DNA of 64,000 bases, taken from positions 186,001 through 250,000 of the IMG/VR virus record IMGVR_UViG_3300042473_001265. One strand, given 5' to 3'. Shown here piece by piece: positions 8,474-57,769 of the stretch. The number at the start of each line of letters is the position of its first letter. Position 1 is the first letter of the stretch. The notes under the pieces are model-generated. The model saw only the letters and a list, made by a program, of their open reading frames with translations. It made no database searches and was not told the DNA's origin. Position numbers and translations under genes: made by a program.

Positions 8474-10300
8474 ATGGCTGAACAAAAATCAGTAGGTAAT
8501 GGCAGAAACGGCGGCTGGCGCAAGTATTTCAAAGTCGCCGACGGTGGCGCCAACGGACAACTCAGCCCTATTTCTGGAAACAACGCCAATGGTTTGCCTG
8601 GTTACAATCGACAAACTGGGTCGGGCAGCAACACAGCCACTGGCAACGATTTTGCTTTTCGCAACTATGCCAGCCGATTACCCGAAGTATATTCAGGTCA
8701 TCCCAACCGTGTCGAACGCTACAATCAATATGAAAACATGGACATGGATTCAGAGATCAATGCATGTCTGGACATCATTGCTGAGTTCAGCACACAAAAC
8801 AACGAAGACAACAATACTCCGTTTGACATAGTGTTCAAAGATACTCCCACTGACCACGAAGTGGAAATTATTAAAAAACAACTGCAACAATGGTGCAAGT
8901 TGAACAAACTGGACCAGCGCATGTTCAAGCTGTTTCGCAACACCATCAAGTATGGTGATCAAGTGTTTGTGCGCGACCCAGAAACATTTGAAATGTACTG
9001 GGTTGACATGGTCAAAGTCAGCAGAGTCATTGTGAATGAAAGCGAAGGCAAGCGTCCCGAGCAGTATGTTATCCGTGACATCAATCCCAACTTTGAAAAT
9101 CTAAGTATTGCTCCCAAAACCACCAGCGATTACTATGTGAGCCGTGCCACAGGATCTGTGGGGCAGAACAACTACTCGGCACCCAATGGCGGCGGTGGAG
9201 GCGGCTATGGTGGATCAGCCGGCAACAGCAGATTCACACAGGCCATGAACGAAACCACAGTGGATGCCAAGCATGTGGTACACCTGAGCTTGAACGAAGG
9301 TCTTGACTATTTTTGGCCGTTTGGACAGAGTATTTTAGAAAATATTTTCAAAGTTTACAAACAAAAAGAACTGTTGGAAGACTCAGTGCTGATATATCGT
9401 GTGAGTCGTGCTCCAGAACGCAGAGTGTTCAAGATTGACGTTGGCAACATGCCCAGCCACATGGCCATGGCCTTTGTGGAACGAGTAAAAAATGAAATGC
9501 ATCAGCGCAGAATTCCCACTGTGAGTGGTGGCGGTGCCAACATGATGGATGCTGCATACAATCCATTGAGCATCAACGAAGATTACTTTTTTCCGCAAAC
9601 AGCCGATGGTCGTGGCAGCAGCGTAGACACCTTGCCCGGTGGCACAGGATTAGGCGAAATTGACGATTTGAAGTATTTCAACAACAAAATGGCTCGTGGT
9701 CTGCGTGTGCCATCCAGCTATTTGCCCACTGGTCCCGACGACTCAGACCGTACAATGAACGACGGAAAAGTAGGCACAGCCCTGATACAAGAGTACAGAT
9801 TCAACCAATACTGTGAACGACTACAGCGTTTGATCATGCAAAAACTTGATGATGAATTCAAGATGTTTATGAAATGGCGTGGATTCAACATCGACAACAG
9901 CATTTTTGATATTGTGTTGGGTCCACCACAAAACTTTGCAAGTTATCGTCAAGCAGAAATGGACACCAGCCGTGTGAGTACATTTGGCGCATTGGAACAA
10001 TTGCCCTACATGAGCAAGCGTTTCTTGATGGAACGATACCTGGGTCTGAGTCAGGAAGAAATTACTGAAAACGCAAAACTTTGGAAAGAAGAGCGCGACG
10101 AGCCTGATCTGCAAACCACACAAGGGCAGGATCTGCGTAGTATTGGCATTACCCCAGCCGGCATGGAAAGTGATATTCAAGCTGGTGAAGCATTGGCTGC
10201 AATGCCGCCCGAAGGCAGTGCTGATGTAGGTGCAGTACCTGGTGCACCGCCTGGTCCTGGAACAGCACCCTCGGCTGTTCCTCCGCCGCCAACTGCATAA
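8474..10300 (+). CDS. gp20: Portal vertex protein
   Basis: LLEDSVLIYRVSRAPERRVFKIDVGNMP, EDYFFP, LPGG..LGEIDDLKYF, LRVPSS motifs. Confidence 0.95.
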   Translation: MAEQKSVGNGRNGGWRKYFKVADGGANGQLSPISGNNANGLPGYNRQTGSGSNTATGNDFAFRNYASRLPEVYSGHPNRVERYNQYENMDMDSEINACLDIIAEFSTQNNEDNNTPFDIVFKDTPTDHEVEIIKKQLQQWCKLNKLDQRMFKLFRNTIKYGDQVFVRDPETFEMYWVDMVKVSRVIVNESEGKRPEQYVIRDINPNFENLSIAPKTTSDYYVSRATGSVGQNNYSAPNGGGGGGYGGSAGNSRFTQAMNETTVDAKHVVHLSLNEGLDYFWPFGQSILENIFKVYKQKELLEDSVLIYRVSRAPERRVFKIDVGNMPSHMAMAFVERVKNEMHQRRIPTVSGGGANMMDAAYNPLSINEDYFFPQTADGRGSSVDTLPGGTGLGEIDDLKYFNNKMARGLRVPSSYLPTGPDDSDRTMNDGKVGTALIQEYRFNQYCERLQRLIMQKLDDEFKMFMKWRGFNIDNSIFDIVLGPPQNFASYRQAEMDTSRVSTFGALEQLPYMSKRFLMERYLGLSQEEITENAKLWKEERDEPDLQTTQGQDLRSIGITPAGMESDIQAGEALAAMPPEGSADVGAVPGAPPGPGTAPSAVPPPPTA

Positions 10301-11397: not shown

Positions 11398-12045
11398 ATG
11401 GCTCGTTATCTACAAGAACATCTCAGCTTCTCGCAAGCGCAGGTAAAACTGCTGAGCGAGGACGCTGTTGATGGCTCTGGTAAAACCCTTTACATGCAAG
11501 GCATCTGCATTGAAGGTGACAAGCGCAATGCTAACGAAAGAATATACCCGGCTCACGAGATCCGCAAAGCAGTTGGCACTATCAATGAACAACTTGAAAA
11601 TGGCAACTCGGTATTAGGTGAAGTAGATCATCCTGATGATCTTAAAATTAACTTGGATCGTGTCAGCCACATGATAGACAAAATGTGGTGCGACGGCGCA
11701 ATAGGTTATGGAAAATTAAAAATATTACCAACCCCAATGGGTCAACTGGTTAAAACCATGTTGGACAGCGGTGTTAAATTAGGTGTTTCAAGTCGTGGGT
11801 CAGGAAACGTCGACGACAGAACAGGACATGTCAGTGACTTTGAAATCGTCACTGTAGATGTAGTTGCACAACCCAGTGCTCCAAATGCATATCCCACAGC
11901 AATTTACGAAGGACTCATGAATATGAAGTACGGACATAGATTGTTGGAAGTGGCACGCGAAGCCGGTGCGGACAACAAAGTACAAAGATATTTGACCAGC
12001 GAAGTAAAAAAGCTGATCAGAGATCTTAAAATTAGGGAGGAATAA
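11398..12045 (+). CDS. gp21: Prohead core protease
   Basis: NANERIYP, LGEVDHP, LGVSSRGSG, DVVAQPSAPNAY. Confidence 0.95.
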   Translation: MARYLQEHLSFSQAQVKLLSEDAVDGSGKTLYMQGICIEGDKRNANERIYPAHEIRKAVGTINEQLENGNSVLGEVDHPDDLKINLDRVSHMIDKMWCDGAIGYGKLKILPTPMGQLVKTMLDSGVKLGVSSRGSGNVDDRTGHVSDFEIVTVDVVAQPSAPNAYPTAIYEGLMNMKYGHRLLEVAREAGADNKVQRYLTSEVKKLIRDLKIREE

Positions 12046-12047
12046 GC

Positions 12048-13148
12048 ATGTTAGATGCTATTAAACCGTTACTAGATAGCGATTTGATCACCGAGGAAAC
12101 TCGCCAGGAGATCTCTGAAGCTTGGGAAGCCAAGATGACAGAAGCTCGTGAACAAGTTCGTGCGGAACTTCGTGAGGAGTTTGCACAGCGCTACGAACAT
12201 GACAAAACAGTGATGGTGGAAGCCCTAGATCGTATGGTTACAGATGGTCTGACCGCAGAGATCCAAGCAGTTGCAGCTGAAAAGCAAGCACTTGCTGAAG
12301 ACCGCGTTAAATTCACTGGCAAAATGAAAGAATCCGCAACGAAGTTTAACAGCTTTATGGTTTCTAAATTAGCCGAAGAAATTGGCGAACTGCGCAAAGA
12401 TCGCAAGCAGCACAACGAAGGCCTCCAGAAATTGGAAGGATTCATTGTGCATGCATTGGCCCGTGAGATTCAAGAATTTGCGACTGACAAACGAGATGTT
12501 GTAGAAACAAAAGTTCGTCTAGTTCGTGAAGCACGAGGCCAGTTGGAATCATTGAAGCGCAGATTCGTAAAAGAATCTGCACAGAAAATGACTCAGTCTG
12601 TAAGTCGTCATCTAAAGGCCGAACTCAGCCAACTACACGAAGACATTAAAGTTGCTCGCGAGAACAATTTTGGTCGTCGTATTTTTGAAGCATATGCCAG
12701 TGAATTTGGTGCTACCCATCTCAATGAGAAAGCGGAAGTACGCAAGTTACACGACACCATTGCACACAAAGATGCCAAGTTGTCTGAAGCCATCAAACTT
12801 ATTAAGAACGCAAAAGTTCTTAACGAGTCCAAAGAGCGTGAAATACGCATGATCAAGGAATCCAATGAGCGTCAAAGCACATTAGATGACTTGCTGGCTC
12901 CCTTAAACCGGGAAAAAGCAGCGGTCATGAGTAGTTTACTCGAAAGCGTCCAAACTAGCCGTTTGAAAAACGCATTTGAAAAGTATCTTCCAGCTGTTCT
13001 AACAGACCGCTCTGTAAAAGCCCCAAAAGTGATTACAGAATCCGTGTCCACAGTCACTGGCGATAAATCTGCCCGTAGCCAATATGAAGAAGAAACTGCT
13101 GAACACAGCAATGTAATCGACATCAAGCGGTTGGCAGGGTTGAATTAA
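12048..13148 (+). CDS. gp22: Prohead scaffolding protein
   Basis: Coiled-coil, Glu/Lys-rich ORF between protease and major capsid genes. Confidence 0.8.
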   Translation: MLDAIKPLLDSDLITEETRQEISEAWEAKMTEAREQVRAELREEFAQRYEHDKTVMVEALDRMVTDGLTAEIQAVAAEKQALAEDRVKFTGKMKESATKFNSFMVSKLAEEIGELRKDRKQHNEGLQKLEGFIVHALAREIQEFATDKRDVVETKVRLVREARGQLESLKRRFVKESAQKMTQSVSRHLKAELSQLHEDIKVARENNFGRRIFEAYASEFGATHLNEKAEVRKLHDTIAHKDAKLSEAIKLIKNAKVLNESKEREIRMIKESNERQSTLDDLLAPLNREKAAVMSSLLESVQTSRLKNAFEKYLPAVLTDRSVKAPKVITESVSTVTGDKSARSQYEEETAEHSNVIDIKRLAGLN

Positions 13149-13166: not shown

Positions 13167-14375
13167 ATGTCACAACAATTATTAGAAGGTCGCTGGGACG
13201 AGACCAAGGAAGCACTGCTTGAAGGTCTAAACGGTTCAAAGCGTAGTAGTATGAACGTTATTCTTGAGAATACTCGTAAGTACTTGAAAGAGAATGCAAG
13301 TGCTGGTTCCACAGCATCTGGTAACATTGCCACATTAAACCGTGTGATTCTGCCAGTGATTCGACGTGTTATGCCAACTGTTATTGCTAACGAGTTGGTT
13401 GGCGTTCAGCCAATGACAGGTCCGGTTGGTCAGATCCACACTCTGCGTGTGCGTTACGCCTCTGCGTTGACAGACAATTCAGCTGCACAAACAAGTGTTG
13501 CTGCTGGTCAAGAAGCACTGAGCCCGTTCACAATTGCCACAGCTTATTCATCAAGCCCAGCTGCTGCTGCTAACGCAGGCACAACTACTACCAACTACCA
13601 GGGCGCTAGCACAGCATCCATGGAAGGTAACGGCGGTAAGACTGTGTCTGTTCAAATCTTGAAGCAAGCTGTTGAAGCTAAAACTCGTAAGCTACAGGCT
13701 CGCTGGACATTTGAATCTGCACAAGACGCACAAGCCATGCATGGTATTGACGTTGAAGCAGAAATCATGGCTGCTCTTGCACAAGAGATTACAGCTGAGA
13801 TTGACCAAGAGATTTTACTCAGCTTGAGCAGTCTGGCTGCCACTGAGTACACATACAACCAAGCTACTGTGAGTGGTACTGCTACATTCGTTGGTGATGA
13901 ACACGCTGCTCTAGCTGTTCTGATCAATCGTGTTGCCAACCTGATCGCTCAGCGTACACGTCGTGGCGCTGGTAACTGGGCTGTTGTTTCACCAGCTAGT
14001 TTGACAGTGCTGCAAAGTGCTACTACCAGTGCGTTTGCTCGTACTACAGAAGGCACATTCGAAGCACCTACAAACACCAAGTTTGTTGGTACATTGAACG
14101 GCGCAATGCGTGTGTTTGTTAACAGCTATGCTAACGATTCGTCACCAGTTCTGGTCGGATACAAAGGTTCTAGTGAGGCTGATGCAGCCGCATTCTATTG
14201 CCCTTACATTCCGTTGATGAGCTCTGGTGTTGTGTTGGATCCAAGCACATTCGAACCAGTCGTGTCATTCATGACAAGATATGGCTTCGTCGAATTGACA
14301 AATACTGCAAGCAGTTTTGGTAACGCTGCCGATTATGTTGGCGAAATAGCAGTACAAAACCTTAGTTTCTCCTAA
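13167..14375 (+). CDS. gp23: Major capsid protein
   Basis: GVQPMTGPVGQI, VEAKTRKLQARWT.E..QD..A.HG.D.EAE, FYCPYIPL, FMTRYG. Confidence 0.97.
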   Translation: MSQQLLEGRWDETKEALLEGLNGSKRSSMNVILENTRKYLKENASAGSTASGNIATLNRVILPVIRRVMPTVIANELVGVQPMTGPVGQIHTLRVRYASALTDNSAAQTSVAAGQEALSPFTIATAYSSSPAAAANAGTTTTNYQGASTASMEGNGGKTVSVQILKQAVEAKTRKLQARWTFESAQDAQAMHGIDVEAEIMAALAQEITAEIDQEILLSLSSLAATEYTYNQATVSGTATFVGDEHAALAVLINRVANLIAQRTRRGAGNWAVVSPASLTVLQSATTSAFARTTEGTFEAPTNTKFVGTLNGAMRVFVNSYANDSSPVLVGYKGSSEADAAAFYCPYIPLMSSGVVLDPSTFEPVVSFMTRYGFVELTNTASSFGNAADYVGEIAVQNLSFS

Positions 14376-14418
14376 TCAGAGATTGTTTGTTTTATTCATC
14401 TCAGGGATGGGAAGAATC

Positions 14419-14444
14419 AAAAAAGCGCCGCAAGGCGCTTTTTT
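14419..14444 (+). terminator. Rho-independent terminator after gp23
   Basis: AAAAAAGCGCC-GCAA-GGCGCTTTTTT. Confidence 0.9.
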
Positions 14445-14445
14445 G

Positions 14446-14474
14446 TTGACTTATGTATCTATAAATGTTATTAT
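14446..14474 (+). promoter_or_regulatory. Sigma70-like promoter for the HNH gene
   Basis: TTGACT-17 nt-TATTAT with TG extension. Confidence 0.5.
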
Positions 14475-14499
14475 AGAGCTTACTAACATAAATAAACAT

Positions 14500-15249
14500 A
14501 TGAACAAATATAACCAATGGTACAAAAATATTACAGAACAAGCTAAAAATCGTGTTCTGGAAACATATACTGAAAGTCATCATATAGTGCCTCGTAGTTT
14601 AGGTGGCAGTGATGACCCAGACAATCTAGTCAATCTTACAGCCAGAGAGCATTTTATTTGTCATTGGCTATTAGTTAAAATAACAGTAGGAGACTCTAGA
14701 TCTAAAATGATCTATGCTTTGCGTATGCTAAGAGCAGAAAAACACGGACAACAACGATATCATACCAAAATTACTAGTAGAGTTTATGAAAGTATTAAAC
14801 AAGAATATTCTAAAATAGCGTCAAACAACAGCATGGGAGAAAAAAATTCCATGTGGGGTAAAACACACACCCCAGAAGCAAGAGAAAAAATTAGACAAAA
14901 GAATTTAGGAAATAAACTAACACCAGACCAACATGCTAGATTGGTAGCAAACACAACTGGTAAAAAGAAACCTCCTATCACTGAAGCACATAGAGCAAAG
15001 TTATCTGATAATCATAAAAGCAAGCAACCTGATTTTAATGGGTCGTTGTCAGATGATACTCGTAAAAAAATTGGCGATAAAATTCGTGGTCGCAAACAGA
15101 CCGAAGAAGAAAAACTGGTTCGCAGTTTGGCCAACATGGGCAAGAAGCGTGAGAAACGACTCTGTCCGCACTGTGATCAACTAGTGGCAGTGAATGGGTA
15201 CGCTCGCTGGCACGGTGCCCATTGCCGCCACCGGATAAATATGTCATGA
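14500..15249 (+). mobile_element. Free-standing HNH homing endonuclease with NUMOD3 DNA-binding repeats
   Basis: ESHHIVPRSLGGSDDPDNLVNLTAREHFICHWLL; repeats MWGKTHTPEAREKI and similar. Start reassigned to ATG 14500, which follows TAAATA. Confidence 0.88.
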
Positions 15250-38837: not shown

Positions 38838-41800
38838 ATGGCACTAACATCACCAGGCGTAGAAGTAACCATCATTGACGAGAGTCAGTATATCCCGTCG
38901 GCTACCAATTCGGTACCGTACATTTTATTGGCAACTGCCCAGAACAAAGCCAGTGCAGCCGGAGTAGGCGTAGCACCAGGAACATTGGCAGCCAACGCTA
39001 ATAGAGTATACTTAATTACAAGTCAGCGTGATTTGGCCGCCACATACGGTAATCCATTCTTCTACAAAACAACTGCTGGTACACCAATCAATGGTTACGA
39101 GCTGAACGAATACGGATTATTGGCTGCTTACTCTGCATTGGGTGCAAGCAATCGTGTGTATGTTCAGCGTGTTGACATTGACTTGACTGAGCTAACAGCC
39201 ACATTGACTCGCCCAACTGGTTCGCCAAACAACAATACTTACTGGTTAGATACTACCAACTCACGATGGGGTATTTTTCAATGGAATGAAACCACTGCTG
39301 CGTTCACTGTGCAAACTCCATTGGTGATTACAAGCACAACACAATTGGAAGTTTCCAGCACAGTTCCTTTACAAACAGTTGGCAGCATTGGTGATTATGC
39401 TATCACCGCTGCTACCGCTGCCACAACATTTAATCCAGGATATTTCAAGCGTGGAGGTCCAACATCTGCTCAGACCAGCTCTGTAGAATTGGCAGACCTG
39501 TACAACACTTGGGTGTTGATTGGCAGCGATGAATGGAAAACTTCATGGCCCACAGTTTCTGGCACATTGGCTCCAACATCATTGACTGCCGGCAATACAT
39601 TCACAGTGAATGACACTTTGATCACTGTGCCAGTTAGCCCTAACAACACAGTAGATGGTATTGCAGATGCAATCAACAGTGCAAATATCACAGGTGTATA
39701 TGCTGCTACCATTGGTGGTAGACTGTACATGTACGCTGATTCTACCGCGTCCAATGACGGTAGCACAGGCAACGGCGGCATTATTTCAATTGCAACCGGC
39801 ACAGGCACGCCACTAACTACATTGGGCATTACAGCTGGTGATTCGTATGCTCCGGCTTTCTTGGCTGCACCTAGTTATGATGCACCACGCTGGGGTTCCA
39901 CACAAACTCAACCACACCCAACTGGCAGTGTATGGCAAAAGATTTCAAGCGTAAACGAAGGTGCTGCATTATCTGTCAAGCAATGGAGCACTGCCTTGGC
40001 CTTGTTTGTACAGCAGGCCTGCCCATTGTACACAACTACTCGAGAGGCAACATATGACCTTGACCCAAGTGGCGGCGGCGCAAATATTCCAGCTGGATCC
40101 ACAATTGGCCGAATTGATGACCTCAACAACAACACCAGTTCTATAGTCATATTTGAACGATTTGCTACCGGTGCAACAGAGATCACCGGTGATGACGACA
40201 CCCCGGGTCCGTTTGTAAACGGCAACTCGTTTACAATAGCTGCTTCACAACCAGGAACATCAGCATTGACAACTGCCACTGCTACCGTGCTTGGCACTAC
40301 CACTGCTGATTTTATTGCCGCAGTCAGTGCAGCAAACATTCCTTATGTCAGTGCTGCTGTCAACAGCGCTGGCGCAATTGTGTTTACACATGCCACTGGC
40401 GGTCAAATAACTTTGACCAACGTGACAGGAACACCTATTGCTACAGCTGGATTTAATTCATCTGTGCGCGGATGTAGTCTATCTTATACCGCAGGCGTAG
40501 CCACCGGACTGGTTTTGATGAACTGGGTATCAACACCAACATTTACCTACATTGCCAGTGCGGATGCCCCAGATCAAGATCCAGCAGACGGTCGTTTATG
40601 GTACTACAGTGCAGTTGATGAGGTTGATATCATGATTCAAGACAACGGATCATGGCAAGGTTATCAAAATGTAACAAACGATGTTCGTGGTTACGATTTG
40701 AGCAATACCAATGCCACCGGTCCTATCATCAGTGCCACTGCACCAGTTACACAAACTGATGAATCCGAGTCTCCATTGGTGTACGGTGACTTGTGGATTG
40801 ACACAAGTGACTTAGAAAATTATCCAGTGATCAGTCGCTGGGAGTCAGTCAGCGGACAAGACCAATGGGTTCCGATCGACAACACTGACCAGACCACACA
40901 AAGTGGTGTGTTATTTGCAGATGCTCGTTGGGCACCAAATGGTACTACAGATCCTATCACAGGTGCCTTTCCAACAATTACAAGTTTATTAACCAGCGAT
41001 TATTTGGATTTAGATGCTCCTACGCCAACACTATATCCACAAGGCATGTTGTTGTTCAACACACGCCGTTCGGGATTCAATGTCAAGAGTTTCCAGGTAA
41101 ATTACTTCAACTCCGTCACATTCCCAGACGACACATTACCGGCTGAAACCAATGCATGGGTAACAGCAAGTGGACTAAGAGCCGACGGTTCTCCATACAT
41201 GGGCCGTCAAGCTCAACGAGCATTGATTGTTGCTGCCATGAAAGCAGGTATTGATACAAACACTGATATCCGTGAAGAACAGCGTCAATTCAACTTGATG
41301 GCAACACCTGCATATCCAGAACTAATGCCCAACATGATTGCACTGAACAATGAGCGTGGCAACACTGGCTTTATCATCGGTGACACTCCGTTGCGTTTAG
41401 ATCCACAAGATATTTTGACTTGGGCAAGCAACAACAACGGTCTAGGATTGCCCACTGGTGATGGCCTGATTGCCGGTAACCAATACATGGGTGTGTTCTA
41501 TCCAAGTTGCCAAACAACTGATTTAAGTGGCAGCCCAGTGGTAACTGCGCCAAGTCACATGATGATTAGAACAATTATCCGCAGTGACGAAGTATCGTTT
41601 CCTTGGTTTGCACCAGCTGGTACACGCCGTGGTGTAGTTGACAATGCTTTACAAATTGGCTACATCAATTCGGGCACAGGCGAATTTGAGTCATTGGGTG
41701 TTCGCCAAGGCCTGCGCGATGTACTGTATGAAAATGCAATCAACCCAATAACATTTATTCCTGGAGTTGGTATCACCAACTTTGGTAATAAAACAACAAC

Positions 41801-42143
41801 TTCGATCACAAGTGCGTTGGATCGTATCAATGTGGCCCGCTTGGTTGCGTTCATACGTGGTCGCTTAGACGTGATTGGCAAGCAGTATTTGTTTGAACCA
41901 AACGATCAAATCACTCGCAATCAGATCAAGAATGCCATTGACGGTCTGATGATTGACCTGGTTGCCAAGCGTGGTTTGTATGACTACTTGGTTGTGTGTG
42001 ATTTGACAAACAATACGCCAGCTCGTATTGATCGTAACGAGTTGTATGTTGACATTGCAATTGAGCCGGTCAAGGCAGTTGAATTCATCTACATTCCAGT
42101 GCGTATCAAGAACACAGGAGAGATATCTGGCGTAGCTAGCTAA
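38838..42143 (+). CDS. gp18: Tail sheath protein (large, with inserted domains)
   Basis: SPGVEVTIIDES, PWFAPAGTRRG, LDRINVARL, FEPND..TR, VVCDLTNNTPARIDRNEL, PVKAVEFI. Confidence 0.95.
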   Translation: MALTSPGVEVTIIDESQYIPSATNSVPYILLATAQNKASAAGVGVAPGTLAANANRVYLITSQRDLAATYGNPFFYKTTAGTPINGYELNEYGLLAAYSALGASNRVYVQRVDIDLTELTATLTRPTGSPNNNTYWLDTTNSRWGIFQWNETTAAFTVQTPLVITSTTQLEVSSTVPLQTVGSIGDYAITAATAATTFNPGYFKRGGPTSAQTSSVELADLYNTWVLIGSDEWKTSWPTVSGTLAPTSLTAGNTFTVNDTLITVPVSPNNTVDGIADAINSANITGVYAATIGGRLYMYADSTASNDGSTGNGGIISIATGTGTPLTTLGITAGDSYAPAFLAAPSYDAPRWGSTQTQPHPTGSVWQKISSVNEGAALSVKQWSTALALFVQQACPLYTTTREATYDLDPSGGGANIPAGSTIGRIDDLNNNTSSIVIFERFATGATEITGDDDTPGPFVNGNSFTIAASQPGTSALTTATATVLGTTTADFIAAVSAANIPYVSAAVNSAGAIVFTHATGGQITLTNVTGTPIATAGFNSSVRGCSLSYTAGVATGLVLMNWVSTPTFTYIASADAPDQDPADGRLWYYSAVDEVDIMIQDNGSWQGYQNVTNDVRGYDLSNTNATGPIISATAPVTQTDESESPLVYGDLWIDTSDLENYPVISRWESVSGQDQWVPIDNTDQTTQSGVLFADARWAPNGTTDPITGAFPTITSLLTSDYLDLDAPTPTLYPQGMLLFNTRRSGFNVKSFQVNYFNSVTFPDDTLPAETNAWVTASGLRADGSPYMGRQAQRALIVAAMKAGIDTNTDIREEQRQFNLMATPAYPELMPNMIALNNERGNTGFIIGDTPLRLDPQDILTWASNNNGLGLPTGDGLIAGNQYMGVFYPSCQTTDLSGSPVVTAPSHMMIRTIIRSDEVSFPWFAPAGTRRGVVDNALQIGYINSGTGEFESLGVRQGLRDVLYENAINPITFIPGVGITNFGNKTTTSITSALDRINVARLVAFIRGRLDVIGKQYLFEPNDQITRNQIKNAIDGLMIDLVAKRGLYDYLVVCDLTNNTPARIDRNELYVDIAIEPVKAVEFIYIPVRIKNTGEISGVAS

Positions 42144-42145
42144 GG

Positions 42146-42172
42146 AAAAAGGAGTGGCAACACTCCTTTTTT
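42146..42172 (+). terminator. Rho-independent terminator after the sheath gene
   Basis: AAAAAGGAGTG-GCAA-CACTCCTTTTTT. Confidence 0.88.
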
Positions 42173-42218
42173 GACCAGACTCAATCACCATAAATAACAG
42201 TATATAGGAGAACAACAA

Positions 42219-42863
42219 ATGGCCGTATCATCACTAAGCAAAATGACAGTTCCTTTGGCCAGCGACCAAAGTGCTTCGACACAGGGTGTATTAATGCCCA
42301 AACTCAAATATCGCTTCAGAGTGTTATTTGAAAATTTCGGAGCCGCTAACAATGCTGCACCTGTAACAGAATTGACCAAGCAGGTGATTGATTTTACCCG
42401 GCCAACTGTTACTTTTGCACAAATTGATTTGCCAATTTACAATTCCACAATCAAGCTGGCTGGCAAGCATTCATGGAATGATATCACCTGCAATCTGCGT
42501 GATGATGCTGGCGCAAATGTACAAAAACTTGTGGGCGAACAGCTACAGAAACAACTGGACTTTATGGAAATGGCCAGCGCCAGTGCTGGTATTGACTACA
42601 AGTTCATTACCAAATTTGAAGTGCTGGACGGCGGCAACGGTGCTGTACAACCAGTGGTTCTTGAATCATGGGAACTGTACGGTTGCTACCTGAAAGAAGT
42701 AAACTACAACGACGCCAACTATGCTTCCAGTGAAGCAATGACCATTGGATTGTCGATCACATTTGACAATGCCAATCAAGTTGTTGGTGGCGGTGTTGGT
42801 TCAGCAGGCACATTGGTTGGTCGAGCAGGAGACGTTGCTACTGGCGTAACTACTGGACTCTAA
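42219..42863 (+). CDS. gp19: Tail tube protein
   Basis: Follows the sheath gene; YRFRV, RP...F, LAGKHSW, W.LYGCY. Confidence 0.85.
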   Translation: MAVSSLSKMTVPLASDQSASTQGVLMPKLKYRFRVLFENFGAANNAAPVTELTKQVIDFTRPTVTFAQIDLPIYNSTIKLAGKHSWNDITCNLRDDAGANVQKLVGEQLQKQLDFMEMASASAGIDYKFITKFEVLDGGNGAVQPVVLESWELYGCYLKEVNYNDANYASSEAMTIGLSITFDNANQVVGGGVGSAGTLVGRAGDVATGVTTGL

Positions 42864-43987
42864 TGAGTTTTGGACAAGATTTTCTCAAAGGTTTTATTGG
42901 CGACAACGGGTTAAGAGATTATACCCACGCTAGTAAAACCTTTCGCACGAATGGCTACGAACTTGCGCCTCGGCTCAAGTTTCTGTTCCATACATATTTC
43001 AATCTGAATCCACAAATACCCGGCGTACAACAACTGTTGGGCAACGGCAATGTTGCCAGCATAGGATTATCTGTCAAAACAGTCGACCTGCCCAGTTATC
43101 AAATCAGTGTTGACACACTGAATCAATACAATCGTAAGCGCCTGGTACAAAGTAAAATTAAATATCAGCCCATTCAAATAACATTCAACGATGACGGCGG
43201 CGACCTAATTCGTAATTTGTGGTACACTTATTTTAACTATTACTACAAAGATCCAGTGAACAAGTACGAAGGTGTTCCCAACACCAATGGCAACAGTGGC
43301 GATTTACAAACAACACCTGCAGGATTCAGTTACAACGCCAGCGATACCTACAGCAATCGTTTTGTGAACGACTGGGGCTACGCTGGCGAATCATATTCAG
43401 ACGGCACATTCACTGGCGCTGGAAAACCTGCATTTTTTAAAGACATTAAAATTTACGGCCTAAATCAACACAAGTTTGCTGCGTATGTGTTGATAAATCC
43501 CATGATCACCGACTGGCGCCACGACACCTACGACTACAGTCAAGGCAACGGCACAATGACACACACTGTCACAATAGATTATGAAACTGTAAAATATTAT
43601 TCTGGTGCCATTGGTGCAGCACGACCAGATACCAATGTGGTTGGGTTTGCTGATCCAAATTATTATGATCAAATTAGAAGTTCGTTGGCACGGCCCGGCA
43701 GTCAGGCCACTGTGTTGGGTCAAGGCGGACTGCTTGATGCTGGAGTGGGTATAATGGAAGATATTCAAGCCTTGGCCTCTGGCAACGGAAGTCTTGCCAA
43801 TGTGTTGGGCGGAGTACAAAAAGCTCTCAATGTGAATGCCACATTGAAAAAGAACTCCATTGGCGATTTGGTAAGAAACGATGCCAAAACAGTACAACAA
43901 GATGTGTTGCGCAACAGCTTGCCCGGCGCAGTTAGAGCTGCTGCAAATTCAGTCAACAGTCAAATATTTCCCAAGGCACCACGATAA
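42863..43987 (+). CDS. Tail-tube-fold baseplate/tube initiator protein (gp48/gp54-like)
   Basis: VKTVDLPSY..NQYNRKR..YQPIQITF.DD..LINP.IT.W.HD..DY. Confidence 0.65.
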   Translation: MSFGQDFLKGFIGDNGLRDYTHASKTFRTNGYELAPRLKFLFHTYFNLNPQIPGVQQLLGNGNVASIGLSVKTVDLPSYQISVDTLNQYNRKRLVQSKIKYQPIQITFNDDGGDLIRNLWYTYFNYYYKDPVNKYEGVPNTNGNSGDLQTTPAGFSYNASDTYSNRFVNDWGYAGESYSDGTFTGAGKPAFFKDIKIYGLNQHKFAAYVLINPMITDWRHDTYDYSQGNGTMTHTVTIDYETVKYYSGAIGAARPDTNVVGFADPNYYDQIRSSLARPGSQATVLGQGGLLDAGVGIMEDIQALASGNGSLANVLGGVQKALNVNATLKKNSIGDLVRNDAKTVQQDVLRNSLPGAVRAAANSVNSQIFPKAPR

Positions 43988-45947: not shown

Positions 45948-47825
45948 ATGAGCTTTTTTCACAACCTAAACAAAAAACTAGATGGCATTGCTGCCCGCCC
46001 TGAATCTGCACAGCTGAATGAGCGTGACATGGGCAAGCACAACAATGCCACAACCGGCTTTGCAGCCTTGGCCAAGAAAGCCGGTGGCGGCGAAAAGGGT
46101 CAAAAGATTGCCGGCGCACAATTCCAGAAGATGAAGAAAGCTGGCCAATTAGAAGAAGGCAATGATTACGACGAGCTACATGATAAAATACAATGGCTGA
46201 TGGGCGCACCAAATTATCTAAGTCGCGACGAAGCTAAAGAAACAGCAGCTTACAATGAAGATCCTGCTATATGGAAAGACAGCGAGTGGGAGGTTGAACT
46301 CGACGAAGGTGTAGACAAGGTAGCATTTGCTGCATTGGCACCCCCTAAAAACAAAATTACTTTTGCTGACAAGATAGCCGGCGCCAAAAAAGAAGTTGAC
46401 GAAATGCTGGGCGACGTTGCTGCTGAAGCAATGAAGAACGCACTCAGTGGCGGCCAAAAGAAATTGGATAAAAATCAAAACGGCAAACTAGATGCCATGG
46501 ACTTTGAGATATTGCGCAAAGGCGCTGGCAAACAATCCATGGGCGAGACGCAAGGCGCCACCACTTACACAGTTGCTTATAAAGATCCTAGCAAACCTGG
46601 CAAGTCATACAGCACTCAAGTCAAAGCCACCAGCGCAGCACAAGCAAAAGCAGCGTTTCAGGAATGGAATCACACAGGTCGTTTCACTTATCTAGGTTCT
46701 AGACCCGACGTTGATGAAGTTTATGAAACCGATCGTGAAAATGCATTCACTGCACACAAACGCCCTAGAGCCGAAACGCCTAAGGTAGGTACAATTACTC
46801 ATGGTTCCAAACATGATGTGGAAGAAATTCCCGGTGGTCGCAGAGTCACTCGTCGCACTGATGCACAAGGCATCAGTGTTGGCGCTGATGATGGTCAAGG
46901 CAGCAGCGATGCTCCACGCGGTCGCGGTCGTCCAAAAGGACCTGCCAAAGCACCTGAGCGTGTGACCGGTGGAGCCACCCGTCACAAAGGTGGTCGTAAA
47001 ATGACCAAAGAAGGCGACATTGAAATTACAGATCAAGGCGAGTACGATCAAGAAGGCGACATGGCCAAAGACAGCATCAAGACTGTGGTGCGTCATGCTC
47101 AGGCTTTGGAAAAAATACTGGGCGACAACGATAACTTGCCAGAATGGGTACAATCCAAATTGGCCAAGATTGAAAGCATGATGACTGCGGTAGATGACTA
47201 CATGCAGAATCAAGAAACTGATCAAGACGATGAAATGGCCATGGGCGAAGAAAAAACTTCTACTCGTGACAACCGTGCTGAAAAGGCCGGCAAGCGAGTG
47301 GCCAAAGATATTGAGCACGATGAAAAAGAAGACGACGAAAAAGAAGACGAACCCAAGAAGTCCAAGAGCAAATTCAAGTTCGGCGGCAGTGTGTATGAAA
47401 ACCTAGATGCACAATTGGAAACCTTGATCAACGAAAGCATGAATGTCACCGTCAACATGGCCACAAGCGACGACGGTCAAGGCGACAACACTATCACTGT
47501 CACTGCCAGCGGCGAAGATGCCATGACATTGGCTCAGTTGTTAAAGAGTGCTGGACTAGCACAGAGTTCACATTCAGGTTGCTCCACTTGCGGTCAAAGC
47601 AGTTGTGGTTGCGAACAAGTGGATGAGAACAGTCCAGACTATCCAACCAATACTGAAACCAGCAACAATGCATTTCAGTATTCGGGTGGTTTAAACAAGC
47701 CCAAGTCAACCGGACAAACAACTACTCCTGTGCTGGCCAGTCAACTGCGCCGCCAGGTCAGTATGGAAGAAAGTGTAAAGATTGAACGCAATTTGTTTGA
47801 CCTATATAAAAATTTTGCAAAATAA
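45948..47825 (+). CDS. Modular, charged putative internal head protein
   Basis: Repeated [LVIM]xE motifs, EF-hand-like DKNQNGKLD, AT-hook-like RGRGRPK. Confidence 0.55.
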   Translation: MSFFHNLNKKLDGIAARPESAQLNERDMGKHNNATTGFAALAKKAGGGEKGQKIAGAQFQKMKKAGQLEEGNDYDELHDKIQWLMGAPNYLSRDEAKETAAYNEDPAIWKDSEWEVELDEGVDKVAFAALAPPKNKITFADKIAGAKKEVDEMLGDVAAEAMKNALSGGQKKLDKNQNGKLDAMDFEILRKGAGKQSMGETQGATTYTVAYKDPSKPGKSYSTQVKATSAAQAKAAFQEWNHTGRFTYLGSRPDVDEVYETDRENAFTAHKRPRAETPKVGTITHGSKHDVEEIPGGRRVTRRTDAQGISVGADDGQGSSDAPRGRGRPKGPAKAPERVTGGATRHKGGRKMTKEGDIEITDQGEYDQEGDMAKDSIKTVVRHAQALEKILGDNDNLPEWVQSKLAKIESMMTAVDDYMQNQETDQDDEMAMGEEKTSTRDNRAEKAGKRVAKDIEHDEKEDDEKEDEPKKSKSKFKFGGSVYENLDAQLETLINESMNVTVNMATSDDGQGDNTITVTASGEDAMTLAQLLKSAGLAQSSHSGCSTCGQSSCGCEQVDENSPDYPTNTETSNNAFQYSGGLNKPKSTGQTTTPVLASQLRRQVSMEESVKIERNLFDLYKNFAK

Positions 47826-53806: not shown

Positions 53807-56800
53807 ATGGCACAAAATAATCCAGGACAACAACTTTCAGACCTTTTGGTCACCCGCGGCTACGACCCAGAGATGCTGGACAGCGCAGGCAAAGCAGCGC
53901 CCACAGCACAAGATGCTGAAATTTTCAGCTTTGATTTTGTCACAGCAAATGGCACCAATCACGGATCAGTGGTTGTGATGCTGGGCGATGATAAAGAATT
54001 AACTGTGTTCAGCGGCGACAATGTTGGCCGTAACATGGACAGCGAAGACAAAACAGAATGGTACGAGTTTCAGCATCAATTGAAAAACTTTGCCACAAAG
54101 AATTTTATGACATTTGCTAGTCAAAACATCAACAAACTCAAATACAGCATGCAAGGGCAAGCAGCCCTTAAAGAAGGCCTGTGCGAAAGTTGGAACGGCA
54201 CAAAGAATGTCAGTTGGAACGGTGGTCCTGATTCTGTTCGACTGATGATACGTCACAAGCGTCCAATGGGCATTGACGAAGCCAGATTTCGTCAGGTAGA
54301 AAGTCTGTTTGTAGAAACCGCAGATGGTGAACGCTACCGATTGCCATTCCGCAATCTAGCCGGCGGTCGTGCCATGGTCGAACATGTTCGTCAAGGCGGT
54401 AAGCCATATGACATGCGCGGCCACCATATTGCTACCATAATTGAAGAACTCAATGTGCTGAGTCGTTTCCGCAGAGCCAGCAAAGGCCAAGTGTTTGAAG
54501 GCGACACAGCCAATTTGATAGCAGAAGCCAATAACTACTACGAAACAATGTGTCGAACCGTAAAAGGACTGTCATCCAGCAAAGGATACAACAGCTATTT
54601 TGAAAGCTGGAATCCTGGCAATATAACTGAACAAGATTTGATCATTGAAGATATCAAAACATTATTCGTGCAAGAAACAATTGATTCACGAATTGAACAG
54701 GCCCTACCTATCCTGGCCCGCATACAACAACAAGGAACCGCTATGAAAGAAGCAAACATATTTGAAGCCTGGGCTGAACGCCTGTTAGAAGGCACATGGG
54801 CAACACCAAATACCCCAGAACAAAAAGAACAGTTGATTGAGTTACTGTCACAAGAACTGCCAGTCGGACCTGACGCCACCAATGCAACAGAACAGTTGTA
54901 CAGTTTGTTTGGCGATGACGAATTGTTTGATCAGTTGCAAGAACTGGCCGAAACCGATCCCGACGCTGATGCTCGTGAAATAGTCATTGCTCGTATGACA
55001 GAATTGGCAGACAGCGGATCAGATCCTGACCTTATGGAAGTACTTGCTGCGTTAGAACCCACAGTGCCTGAACCACAAGCTGCGGCCAACCCAGAAGCCG
55101 TAGTGGAAAGTTGGGTAGGCAATATTGTAAATACCGCTAAATCTATGTTTGCTAAAAATGCAGACCCGGTACCAGTGAGTGAATCTGCAGAACTCAACAC
55201 CATACTGAAGTATGCTGGCATTCCATTAAGAGAAGGCGTGTTAGATGACGTCAGAGCCAGAATGGATGCAAGACGCAATCCTGCTGCAACTCCTGCTACT
55301 GCACAGCCGGCACAATCTCCTACTACACAGGCACCTAAATTCAAAGTTGGGGACACTGTGAGTTTTGGTATAGGTAGAGGCATACCGAGCACCGGTACAA
55401 TTACTGCTATGGGTCCAGGCCCTACTCAACTGACTGTTAAAACTGCTGAGGGTGAGAATCAATTAGATACCAGAATGAAAAGTCTGTATCTACAGTTAGT
55501 ACCGTCAACAACATCTGCAGAGTCCCAACAATCAACACCTGATCTGCCGCGGGCAGAAGTGGTGTCCACAATGGGCATGCCTAGCCGATCTCTGATTGGT
55601 TATAAAGACAACACATATACACCTTCAGGACCATATACCAAGGCGCCAGAGGGTGCAACCGGAACACAAGTACTTGTGCCTGCCGCAGCATTTGGTATTA
55701 GAAGCATGGGTGATGTTGTTGCTTTGCTAACTGACGATGGTACAGCCTATGCTGAACAACCAATAAAAGTGTCTAATCCTTTTGGTCGAGCAGCAGGCAG
55801 CGCAAGTCGTCAACCAAACCCAACACAAGGGCTAGACGAAGCTGGTGAGTGGAAAGCAGAAGCCGAAGACTTTAAAGAATGGTCAAACCATGTCAAAGAC
55901 TCATTGCTTGGTGTTGCTCCAAGTCAACGATTTGCTATGGCAAAACGACTAAGTCAAATTGAAATGAAACATTTTGGCGACAGTCAGGCAGCTAGCTCAT
56001 TCAATGCACAAACAGGCCGACCAACGGGCAATACCAGTGGCATGACAACCACAGTACAACACATCTTGGATGCAATTAACGATGGTAAACTTACCAATGC
56101 AAGCTCGCCGGATGCTGCTGCTGCTGTAGCCAGTGGCGGAACTACACAACAAACACCGTTTGGATCAGTTACTAGACCAGCAGGCCAACCAGATCCGTAT
56201 CAAGCATCACCCGCTTTGCCTAACGGCGACCGTCCGGCTGCTGTTGCTGCACAGAATCGACCAAGACCACAAAAAGGCGGCGGCAGTATCCAAATATTAA
56301 AAACTGAAGAAGATTGGGAAGAAGCGTTAAGTAACCCTGACCTAGGGCGCGACTTAGACGCTGATAATCGTCCAACAACTGCTGCTGGACTTGATTCGGC
56401 AATGTCAAAATTACCAAGTTGGAAAGTAATGCTGGCAACTATTATAATGGGTTCAAAACTTCCTATCATTGGTGACAAGATAAAAAATACAATAGTATCG
56501 TCAATTGAAAAAGAGTTTGGAGTACGCATGTCTTTTAAAGATGCACTGGAATATATGAAGCATGTTAGAAATACTCCAGCTGCACAAATTGTACCACCAG
56601 CTGTTTGGAAGTTTGAAAGAGATGGCGGCGATTATGAAACTGCCATTGAGCAATTGCCCGATGACGCAGTAGACGTACAACCAGCAGAAGTTATGTCTAC
56701 CATTGCAACTGACTTGATCGACGCTGGAGTAGCCCAAGAGATCAAACCCGGAGACGAAACTCCAAGCAATGCTGGCGCAGATGCATTTGGTAATATGGCA

Positions 56801-57769
56801 TCACAATTGACAAAAAAGGATGAACCAGTGGCAGAATCTACAGAACTCAACACCATACTGAAGTATGCTGGTATCCCGGTGGCCGAAAGCCGTGTGCTGG
56901 ACGAAGCAGGCGAAACAATCGATCACATATTGAATCGTTTCAAACACGAAGTCAAACAGTTCGAACAAGGCCACGACTTGGATTCCGACCTGTATGAAGC
57001 CCTGTTTGACTACTATTCAGACGCAGGAGAACTGCCATACGGCATTGCCAAAGCCCGCACAGGTGATCCATTCAACTGGGTCAGTGACAAATTGGCTGAT
57101 CATCTTGGTGTGAACGAAGGATGGAAAGGTGCAATTGCAGGCGGCCTAGCAGGCGGAGCACTGGGCAGTGTAGTGCCAGCACTGGGTACATTGGCTGGCG
57201 CAGCCGCAGGCGCCTACGCTGGTCACAAACTAGGCGATGAAGGATTTAAAGATCCAGACGCAGAGTATAAAAAGGCGCAAAAACTCAAACAAACACCACC
57301 AGTAGCCGAAGGTCCGGTTGGTAGTTTAGTGGGCGGAATTGCTGGCGCAGCACTTACCAAAACACCCAGCGGCGCAATGGCAGGTTCTAGACTGGGCAGT
57401 GCTGTGGGCGATGCAATGTCGGGTAGCGAAGAAACAGACGAAGGCCAGCATACACAGCATGGCATGGATGCCACTCCGGGTCGCGTTGATTACAAAGATG
57501 AAAAATTTTCAGACATAAAACCAATGGGTTTTCGACAAGACCCAATTCAGGCAACTACAGATCGTGCTCTCAAGTACAGCGCACAAGGCGTAAACAAGTT
57601 GCGTGACCTGTTCCGCGAAGACGAACAGGCCGTGGTTGAGAATCAGGACAAATTTTCGGCCTTGAGCGGACAATACGGACATTCGGGCAAACTGCAAAAG
57701 TTTGATGATGTTGAACAGGATGTGCTGGCCAGACTCAAACAACTGTCCGGAATGATTAGACCAATGTAA
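53807..57769 (+). CDS. Large modular protein (putative internal/ejection polyprotein)
   Basis: 1320 aa; many [LVI]xE[SGA] motifs, an internal duplicated linker, two glycine-zipper segments; the C-terminal LARLKQLSG resembles the scaffold C-terminus IKRLAGL. Confidence 0.6.
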   Translation: MAQNNPGQQLSDLLVTRGYDPEMLDSAGKAAPTAQDAEIFSFDFVTANGTNHGSVVVMLGDDKELTVFSGDNVGRNMDSEDKTEWYEFQHQLKNFATKNFMTFASQNINKLKYSMQGQAALKEGLCESWNGTKNVSWNGGPDSVRLMIRHKRPMGIDEARFRQVESLFVETADGERYRLPFRNLAGGRAMVEHVRQGGKPYDMRGHHIATIIEELNVLSRFRRASKGQVFEGDTANLIAEANNYYETMCRTVKGLSSSKGYNSYFESWNPGNITEQDLIIEDIKTLFVQETIDSRIEQALPILARIQQQGTAMKEANIFEAWAERLLEGTWATPNTPEQKEQLIELLSQELPVGPDATNATEQLYSLFGDDELFDQLQELAETDPDADAREIVIARMTELADSGSDPDLMEVLAALEPTVPEPQAAANPEAVVESWVGNIVNTAKSMFAKNADPVPVSESAELNTILKYAGIPLREGVLDDVRARMDARRNPAATPATAQPAQSPTTQAPKFKVGDTVSFGIGRGIPSTGTITAMGPGPTQLTVKTAEGENQLDTRMKSLYLQLVPSTTSAESQQSTPDLPRAEVVSTMGMPSRSLIGYKDNTYTPSGPYTKAPEGATGTQVLVPAAAFGIRSMGDVVALLTDDGTAYAEQPIKVSNPFGRAAGSASRQPNPTQGLDEAGEWKAEAEDFKEWSNHVKDSLLGVAPSQRFAMAKRLSQIEMKHFGDSQAASSFNAQTGRPTGNTSGMTTTVQHILDAINDGKLTNASSPDAAAAVASGGTTQQTPFGSVTRPAGQPDPYQASPALPNGDRPAAVAAQNRPRPQKGGGSIQILKTEEDWEEALSNPDLGRDLDADNRPTTAAGLDSAMSKLPSWKVMLATIIMGSKLPIIGDKIKNTIVSSIEKEFGVRMSFKDALEYMKHVRNTPAAQIVPPAVWKFERDGGDYETAIEQLPDDAVDVQPAEVMSTIATDLIDAGVAQEIKPGDETPSNAGADAFGNMASQLTKKDEPVAESTELNTILKYAGIPVAESRVLDEAGETIDHILNRFKHEVKQFEQGHDLDSDLYEALFDYYSDAGELPYGIAKARTGDPFNWVSDKLADHLGVNEGWKGAIAGGLAGGALGSVVPALGTLAGAAAGAYAGHKLGDEGFKDPDAEYKKAQKLKQTPPVAEGPVGSLVGGIAGAALTKTPSGAMAGSRLGSAVGDAMSGSEETDEGQHTQHGMDATPGRVDYKDEKFSDIKPMGFRQDPIQATTDRALKYSAQGVNKLRDLFREDEQAVVENQDKFSALSGQYGHSGKLQKFDDVEQDVLARLKQLSGMIRPM
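55188..55218 (+). repeat. 31-bp exact direct repeat, copy 1
   Basis: CAGAACTCAACACCATACTGAAGTATGCTGG, also at 56841-56871. Confidence 0.9.
56841..56871 (+). repeat. 31-bp exact direct repeat, copy 2
   Basis: Identical to 55188-55218. Confidence 0.9.

Follow-up and report, generated by a model that had tools for sequence, protein, structure and literature searches.

Short C-terminal peptides, such as the tails of scaffold proteins and the cargo-loading peptides of encapsulins, suffice to bring a protein into a shell of the HK97 fold. The scaffold C-terminus is the shell-binding site in phages P22 and 80-alpha, and the SaPI1 protein CpmB mimics the scaffold tail of 80-alpha. In T4, the prohead protease gp21 cleaves L/I-X-E sequences behind the Glu, and in gp22 the cut falls at a Glu-Ala bond (PMC9026906); the proteins of the prohead core carry a targeting peptide that is removed after assembly, and they are delivered with the DNA (PMC9958956). 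Head proteins of phiKZ, 201phi2-1 and SPN3US are cut several times after Glu, with redundant sites in the parts that are removed (PMC5694885, PMC9026906). Here we describe a gene of a jumbo phage from lake water whose head module is of the T4 type. The window we analysed is a stretch of 64,000 nucleotides (nt), bases 186001-250000 of the 340,172-bp IMG/VR virus record IMGVR_UViG_3300042473_001265 (estimated 98% complete), and the gene encodes P0001, a protein of 1320 amino acids (aa). P0001 is assembled from modules that are gained and lost, and it carries three copies of a short tag that resembles the C-terminal tail of the phage's own gp22-like scaffold. We lean towards reading it as a late, head-associated modular polyprotein whose tags would dock in the prohead core, after which the prohead protease would free the modules.

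P0001 lacks defining features of its closest described systems, namely an N-terminal targeting peptide, homology and hallmark domains. It is like T4 IPI-III and Alt, which gp21 processes, in its Peptidase_S77 protease and hydrophobic-x-Glu (PhixE) sites and in a short targeting peptide that would go after assembly, and delivery with the DNA may be a further likeness. The T4 proteins are targeted from the N-terminus, whereas the tags of P0001 are C-terminal or internal, like the scaffold's own tail; P0001 also differs in its many modules and in having several tags per polypeptide, and there is no sequence similarity. The ejection and inner-body proteins of phiKZ, 201phi2-1 and SPN3US are likewise jumbo-phage head proteins with multiple cuts after Glu (predicted ones in P0001), but they belong to another phage lineage with a protease of another subfamily and the motif S/A/G-X-E, they have no homology to P0001, and they are not known to have tags or a cassette architecture. 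With polyvalent proteins (Iyer et al. 2017, PMC5512222) and MuF-anchored toxins, P0001 shares large size, a link to the virion, a conserved anchor and shuffled domains, and as in polyvalent proteins we found many domains per polypeptide, variable architectures and a virion-gene context. In contrast, a Pfam search of P0001 and 52 non-redundant variable regions, the set used for all Pfam results below unless stated, found none of the polyvalent hallmark domains (MuF, ArdC, the peptidase MPTase, ART, nucleases, methylases). The features of MuF polymorphic toxins are also missing: there was no MuF or toxin match, the downstream gene encodes a gp32-like single-stranded DNA-binding protein (SSB), no immunity gene is evident, and the head protease would carry out the release in trans. 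Compared with scaffold tails and encapsulin peptides, the short C-terminal peptide is here copied into several cargo-like proteins, also internally.

The original prediction drew attention to a linker, E-S-x-ELNTILKYAGIP, that is present twice in P0001 with an exact 31-nt repeat, and both the repeat finder and the translation bear this out. The direct repeat, D1, lies at 55171-55224 and 56824-56877 (54 nt, 89% identity) and was the single outstanding repeat in the repeat search; its exact 31-nt core lies at 55188-55218 and 56841-56871, 1653 nt or 551 codons apart. An exact match of this length inside 4 kb is far beyond chance. The in-frame spacing is trivial because both copies code for one peptide, which reads ..PVSE-SAELNTILKYAGIP-LRE.. 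at residues 457-476 and, in the same frame, ..PVAE-STELNTILKYAGIP-VAE.. at residues 1008-1027. We found nothing anomalous in the base composition of the cassette that the copies enclose, and a megablast search against 50,697 phage records gave zero matches.

The anatomy of P0001 (Table 1) and the gain and loss of its modules are established. Nearly all of the 120 homologues listed (727-1260 aa) share residues 1 to ~435, which we call the N-domain, and the last ~35 residues. The 46 distinct complete orthologues from viral contigs are 534 to 1137 aa long. The variable slot behind the N-domain holds from 0 to >550 aa of unrelated modules. In P0007 the slot is empty, and the N-domain is followed at once by a single tag and the C-terminal module; the slot holds ~45 aa in P0005, ~85 aa in P0109, ~165 aa in P0075, ~280 aa in P0008 and ~480 aa in L007, all mutually unrelated, and in P0001 it holds the 534-aa cassette. 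The gene had been predicted to be a platform that gains and loses modules, an idea that colinear and invariant orthologues would contradict. We looked for such colinearity and clearly did not find it, as the orthologues carry other cargo or none behind the N-domain. The 77-aa module at residues 1028-1104 of P0001 is a separate gene in distant relatives. Many orthologues, although not P0001, carry a Cys-rich mini-module, C-N-x-T-x-E-G-x-x-C-P-[ED]-H-G-L-x-E-C, which is found in the C-terminal regions of L005, L009, L016, L022, L220 and P0109 and may be a metal-binding knuckle. Next to the genes of distant relatives we also noted polyprotein-like genes (L041:4235-5425 and L047:5242-6981) with a repeated ..PDF/YLD-[ML]-DKDGDKKEPMKKA.. 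and tags.

The cassette itself had been put forward as a repeat-bounded unit of gain and loss, and its distribution agrees with this, with the addition that its three sub-modules also move separately. Residues 480-880 of P0001 are covered by only 5-6 of the 120 homologues listed, and a search restricted to the cassette found parts of it in only 14 proteins within the length range searched. The three sub-modules are found in other combinations, also in proteins that have no N-domain, and several of the proteins with cassette parts have other N-termini. L005 has an N-domain only 53% identical to that of the window and a cassette that is 86% identical, while L007 has an N-domain that is 93% identical and an unrelated middle; judged by these identities, the cassette is exchanged between lineages. 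A second allele with two tags is present at L220:7422-9334 (IMGVR_UViG_3300042445_001509), where the tag DNA occurs twice at a spacing of 1884 nt; this allele retains the cassette leader and the third sub-module, with different small domains replacing the beta domains between them. We considered concerted evolution of the two tag copies, which are Ile/Ile in the window and Met/Met in L005, and dropped it given that L220 has one Ile and one Met copy. Modules of the P0001 type are also present in two other proteins of the same genome, of 625 aa (in the window) and 1466 aa (outside it), and a module at about residues 201-258 of the 625-aa protein is nearly identical to cargo in the P0001 orthologues L007 and P0004.

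By sequence comparison, the repeated peptide is not just a linker but a tag that resembles the scaffold tail and is present as two copies. The gp22-like scaffold ends in ..NVIDIKRLAGLN (nt 13110-13145), that is ..NVIDIKRLAGL(N/K), and this tail is invariant across 77 relatives as ..N[VI]I[DE][IL]KRLAGL, while the residues directly before it are hypervariable across the 77 related contigs, making the tail a candidate shell- or core-docking peptide. The tag is an amphipathic stretch of ~10 residues with the pattern hydrophobic-x-x-hydrophobic-basic-x-hydrophobic-[A/S]-G-hydrophobic; when the tags are aligned on the glycine, positions -8, -5, -2 and +1 are hydrophobic, -4 or -3 is basic and -1 is A or S. 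The same class of tag ends 45 of the 46 complete orthologues, and P0001 likewise. In the 340-kb genome the pattern, which was written post hoc from instances already seen, occurs at seven places in four proteins (the scaffold, P0001 three times, the 625-aa protein and the 1466-aa protein) against a chance expectation of 0.9. Four distant relatives (28-31% identity, 477-497 aa) are stand-alone N-domain proteins, and all of them end a few residues past a tag that follows ES-A-D/E and aligns with tag copy 1 of P0001. On this alignment the tag is the ancestral C-terminus of the stand-alone N-domain proteins, and we read copy 1 as that old C-terminus and copy 2 as having arrived with, or been joined to, the cassette. 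A complex prediction for the capsid protein and P0001 residues 446-481 scored 0.29, where the mark is 0.32, and weighs on neither side of the binding question. Readings of the tag as a helix-hairpin-helix or UBA motif were dropped because the remaining parts of those motifs are missing. Reasoning by analogy from scaffold tails and the targeting peptide of T4, we somewhat favour the tag being a scaffold-like docking signal in the prohead core that would then be removed.

In T-even tail-fibre genes, short conserved DNA segments flank variable ones and serve as crossover points. The tag DNA would play a comparable part here, with the differences that the target is a head-associated protein and that the conserved segment is a candidate to code for a functional peptide as well. 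Fifteen viral contigs of the ELNT[I/M]LKYAG subclade share an identical 29-nt core; as the search was for the exact word, these matches are ascertained. At least seven unrelated sequences precede the 29-mer and several distinct ones follow it, the codons just outside it vary, and the lineages that share it include ones with an N-domain only ~50% identical to that of the window. Identical core DNA among unrelated flanks indicates recent exchange through the tag point in this subclade. In the wider clade, the tag peptide is encoded with ordinary synonymous variation, and therefore selection acts on the peptide. In contigs from samples of the same lake, the match to the window begins only at the tag, and a different sequence precedes it (loose ends at 55181 and 56828/9); this comparison covered Logan contigs of four lake runs and ignored joints with a side of 30 letters or fewer. 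Logan k=31 unitigs end and start exactly at the 31-nt repeat, which forms its own 31-nt unitig (run X17). Short-read assemblies of the P0001 gene are ambiguous at the repeat because the k=31 unitigs collapse on the 31-mer.

Motifs of the type [LV]xE had been suggested to delimit the modules, and the enrichment of sites does coincide with module boundaries. P0001 has 31 [LIVM]xE motifs against 18.3 +/- 3.8 in shuffles of the protein, and 18 [LIVM]xE[GSA] motifs against 4.9 +/- 2.2 (z=6.1). When we scanned the 262 non-overlapping open reading frames (ORFs) of the genome for [LIVM]xE[GSA] against their own shuffles, P0001 and the gp22-like scaffold were the only outliers, with z=6.5 each as against 3.1 for the ORF that came next. 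In the modular half of P0001, predicted sites end at E434, 459, 476, 678, 1010, 1027, 1033, 1064, 1104, 1168 and 1278. Among boundaries of homology blocks, 43 of 155 fall within 4 residues of a predicted site (16.3 +/- 5.9 expected), and the cassette alignment shows that every cassette sub-module starts just past a predicted site, whatever its upstream sequence. Internal tags (89 distinct ones) have a predicted cut site on both sides in 56% of cases, compared with 4% at random positions. Some sites are conserved within the N-domain as well: LLE-G at 326-328 is universal (54/54 sequences, four of them at 28-31% identity), and LKE-G and LCE-S at 121-127 are conserved, all in low-confidence loops of the structure model. 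The original prediction also expected a gp21-type protease, and a Peptidase_S77 gene is indeed present within the same window. From this pattern of motifs we believe that P0001 is probably a substrate of the prohead protease.

The only Pfam matches were glycine zippers, TAT_signal and one GP88. Two glycine zippers had been claimed for P0001; the one at residues 1108-1144 stands (PF13488, 26.5 bits, above the curated cut-off of 25), but the second, at ~1171-1203, is weaker and falls below the cut-off, although PF13488 reports two stretches and a YMGG-type model gives E 0.064. Canonical internal twin-arginine (Tat) signals are present in eight orthologues (P0050, P0054, P0074, P0081, P0082, P0086, P0096 and P0104) and in the 1466-aa protein of the same genome (L136:2379-6779; G000:C1:66378-70778), which also has a LysM domain and two tags. 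The signals lie directly behind an LDE or IEE site, just past a tag, and Pfam TAT_signal scores above its cut-off in P0054. A Tat signal is functional only once it is exposed at the N-terminus, so buried Tat signals behind such sites argue independently for cleavage there and for delivery into a cytoplasm. The Tat pattern is the best indirect support that we have for release and injection, and it comes from paralogues and orthologues, not from P0001 itself. Pfam and PHROGs searches with the cassette alone gave no match. The cassette model was poor (predicted local distance difference test, pLDDT, 52) except for two small beta domains; its KOW, Tudor and SH3-like matches were weak (E at or above 0.01) and were set aside, and an ESM Atlas feature search with residues 679-1010 gave no usable match. 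The N-domain model (pLDDT 75) had no match in the PDB by Foldseek and only generic rows with Z<7 in a wide VIA-align comparison, and among its BFVD neighbours, which are uncharacterised phage proteins, one is named 'large polyvalent protein-associated domain'. P0001 contains beta domains and disordered linkers, unlike a long helical scaffold.

The P0001 gene has the gene for the large terminase (TerL) on its 5' side and genes for the gp32-like SSB and then UvsX on its 3' side. The order TerL, N-domain protein, SSB, UvsX is common to Pseudomonas phage PA5oct and Erwinia phage Hallingskeid, whose homologues (430-496 aa) are annotated as virion structural proteins. The PA5oct one (gp278, 'virion structural protein') is 23% identical and carries a note of detection by electrospray ionisation tandem mass spectrometry (ESI-MS/MS).

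Putting these observations together, the mechanism that we favour would run as follows. The tags would dock P0001 in the core of the prohead in the same way as the scaffold, and the gp21-type protease would cut on either side of the tags and free the modules. The freed pieces would include the glycine-zipper parts and, in relatives, pieces with a Tat signal at their start. They would exit with the DNA and act at the envelope of the next host, and the identical tag DNA would be the crossover point for swaps of the cassette. Ejection and membrane action of the modules we regard as a plausible extension that we hesitate to adopt.

Several points weigh against this mechanism. What the data show directly is the anatomy, the statistics and the comparative pattern; docking, cleavage and ejection are inferred from them. 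No enzyme, toxin or anti-defence domains were found with Pfam, and no T4-style N-terminal targeting peptide was found in P0001, whose first PhixE comes at residue 121. Some of the PhixE excess falls within N-domain helices, where it could owe something to local sequence periodicity. Besides the post hoc origin of the broad tag pattern, a narrow hidden Markov model built from 19 scaffold tails alone fails to retrieve the P0001 tags, and the tag was not found in the PA5oct and Hallingskeid homologues. The ESI-MS/MS note in PA5oct, the one pointer to a place in virions, is also on UvsX, so the virion list may hold contaminants and the note is weak evidence. Some of these observations would suit an auxiliary scaffold or core 'filler', which docks and is cut and whose fragments are expelled or inert; in this reading the modules are not delivered effectors, and their variability is neutral or tunes head filling. 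P0001 does share the scaffold's tail tag and its extreme PhixE[GSA] enrichment, no functional domain was recognised in any cargo, and the N-domain itself has conserved predicted cut sites in loops. We nevertheless consider a filler unlikely, as Tat signals unmasked by predicted cuts, LysM and glycine zippers are ill-suited to discarded material and mature virions are the reported source of the PA5oct homologue. P0001 does not fit the scaffold class itself, whose gene lies between those of the protease and the capsid protein: its gene is 40 kb off, behind TerL, and it has only the tail tag and the density of cut sites in common with the scaffold.

The tag could also be a protease-recruiting exosite, or a mere conserved recombination linker left by gene fusions, instead of a docking signal. 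Predicted cut sites flank the tags on both sides, the DNA core is identical across unrelated flanks, and tag-terminated genes have undergone fusion or fission between lineages, all of which such a reading would accommodate. Against it stand the normal synonymous change in the wider clade, which points to a protein under selection, and the position of the tag at the very C-terminal end of the scaffold of 77 relatives, the part that binds the shell in other phages, and we give this reading rather little credence. Less probable again is a structural role of P0001 in the tail or baseplate, or as a tape-measure-like protein, out of reach of the head protease, with the PhixE excess and tag likeness both coincidental. 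The glycine-zipper stretch does match PHROGs that include 'tail associated lysin', and the PA5oct record assigns the homologue to the virion in general, but the gene follows the terminase gene and not tube or baseplate genes (a tape-measure gene would lie between tube/chaperone and baseplate genes; P0001 starts at 53807, behind TerL), P0001 and the scaffold are the only genome-wide outliers in the cut motif, and P0001 shares the scaffold's tail.

The head genes of the window are listed in Table 1; the sheath and tube genes lie at 38838-43987. Relatives of the capsid protein are present on >600 viral contigs, and the sequence was found again in at least 24 lake-water metagenome runs. Just 5' of the portal gene is a gene for a 763-aa protein (6144-8435) whose N-terminal part is long and helical and which has a lysozyme/chitinase-like GH19 domain at residues 593-645; it may be a virion-borne lysin. 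Immediately after the capsid gene we noted an HNH-type endonuclease-like ORF of 288 aa (14383-15249) that is probably a homing endonuclease. Three radical-SAM proteins are encoded around the P0001 gene (51067-52215, 59555-60439 and 61447-62601), and in two of the three the SPASM domain is N-terminal to the radical-SAM core, the inverse of the usual order.

Table 1. Features of the P0001 gene and of related genes, in window coordinates
Feature	Position	Strand	Remarks
Portal	8474-10300		Portal_T4, E 2.5e-103
Acidic 253-aa protein			part of the head module
T4 gp21-type prohead protease	11398..12045	+	presumed processing enzyme; Peptidase_S77, PF03420 84.9 bits
gp22-like scaffold, 366 aa, helical	12048..13148	+	between protease and capsid genes; 12 PhixE[GSA] sites
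Major capsid protein	13167..14375	+	invariant LLE-G at residues 5-7 and 17-19 (cut predicted after E)
625-aa tag-bearing modular protein	45948..47825	+	between tail genes and terminase gene; tag at 528-537; Cys-rich stretch
P0001, whole gene	53807..57769	+	open ORF, 1320 aa; start 24 nt past the large terminase gene
Conserved N-terminal domain, residues 1-434	53807..55108	+	family anchor; homologous to PA5oct gp278
Tag copy 1, residues 460-476	55184..55234	+	flanked by VSE and LRE sites; repeat core 55188-55218
Cassette leader and sub-module M1, residues 477-565	55235..55501	+	leader VLDDVRARMDARRNP, P/A-rich; M1 a small beta-barrel
Cassette sub-module M2, residues 566-678	55502..55840	+	beta-rich domain; ends at LDE-A site
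Cassette sub-module M3, residues 679-1010	55841..56836	+	helical, one hydrophobic helix; ends at VAE-S site
Tag copy 2, residues 1011-1027	56837..56887	+	VAE site on either side; repeat core 56841-56871
Widespread 77-aa module, residues 1028-1104	56888..57118	+	..YEALFDYY..GELPYGIAKARTGDP..; ends at VNE-G site
Glycine-zipper module 1, residues 1105-1168	57119..57310	+	PF13488 at 1108-1144; ends at VAE-G site
Glycine-zipper module 2 and acidic His-rich stretch, residues 1169-1278	57311..57640	+	ends at VVE-N site
Conserved C-terminal tail, residues 1279-1320	57641..57766	+	terminal tag ..VLARLKQLSGM..

In a recent review of T4, the placement of proteins in the prohead core is called 'mysterious' (PMC9958956). 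The locus described here provides a concrete candidate for the signal, a tag of ~10 residues that is common to the scaffold and to cargo-like proteins and is flanked by protease sites. As a tentative idea that goes well beyond P0001, the scaffold tail may have become, across a large clade of jumbo phages from fresh water, a portable head-loading signal that was copied to the ends and the interior of several modular polyproteins; excision of the tags would unmask Tat signals and zipper pieces, the host Tat system would move modules to the periplasm, and crossovers in the tag DNA would diversify the cargo. If the tag proves to be the signal, exchange of cassettes would explain how jumbo phages diversify the material that they deliver from the head, foreign proteins could be loaded into these capsids by means of the tag, and Tat signals exposed by proteolysis would suggest a way for injected phage proteins into the periplasm.

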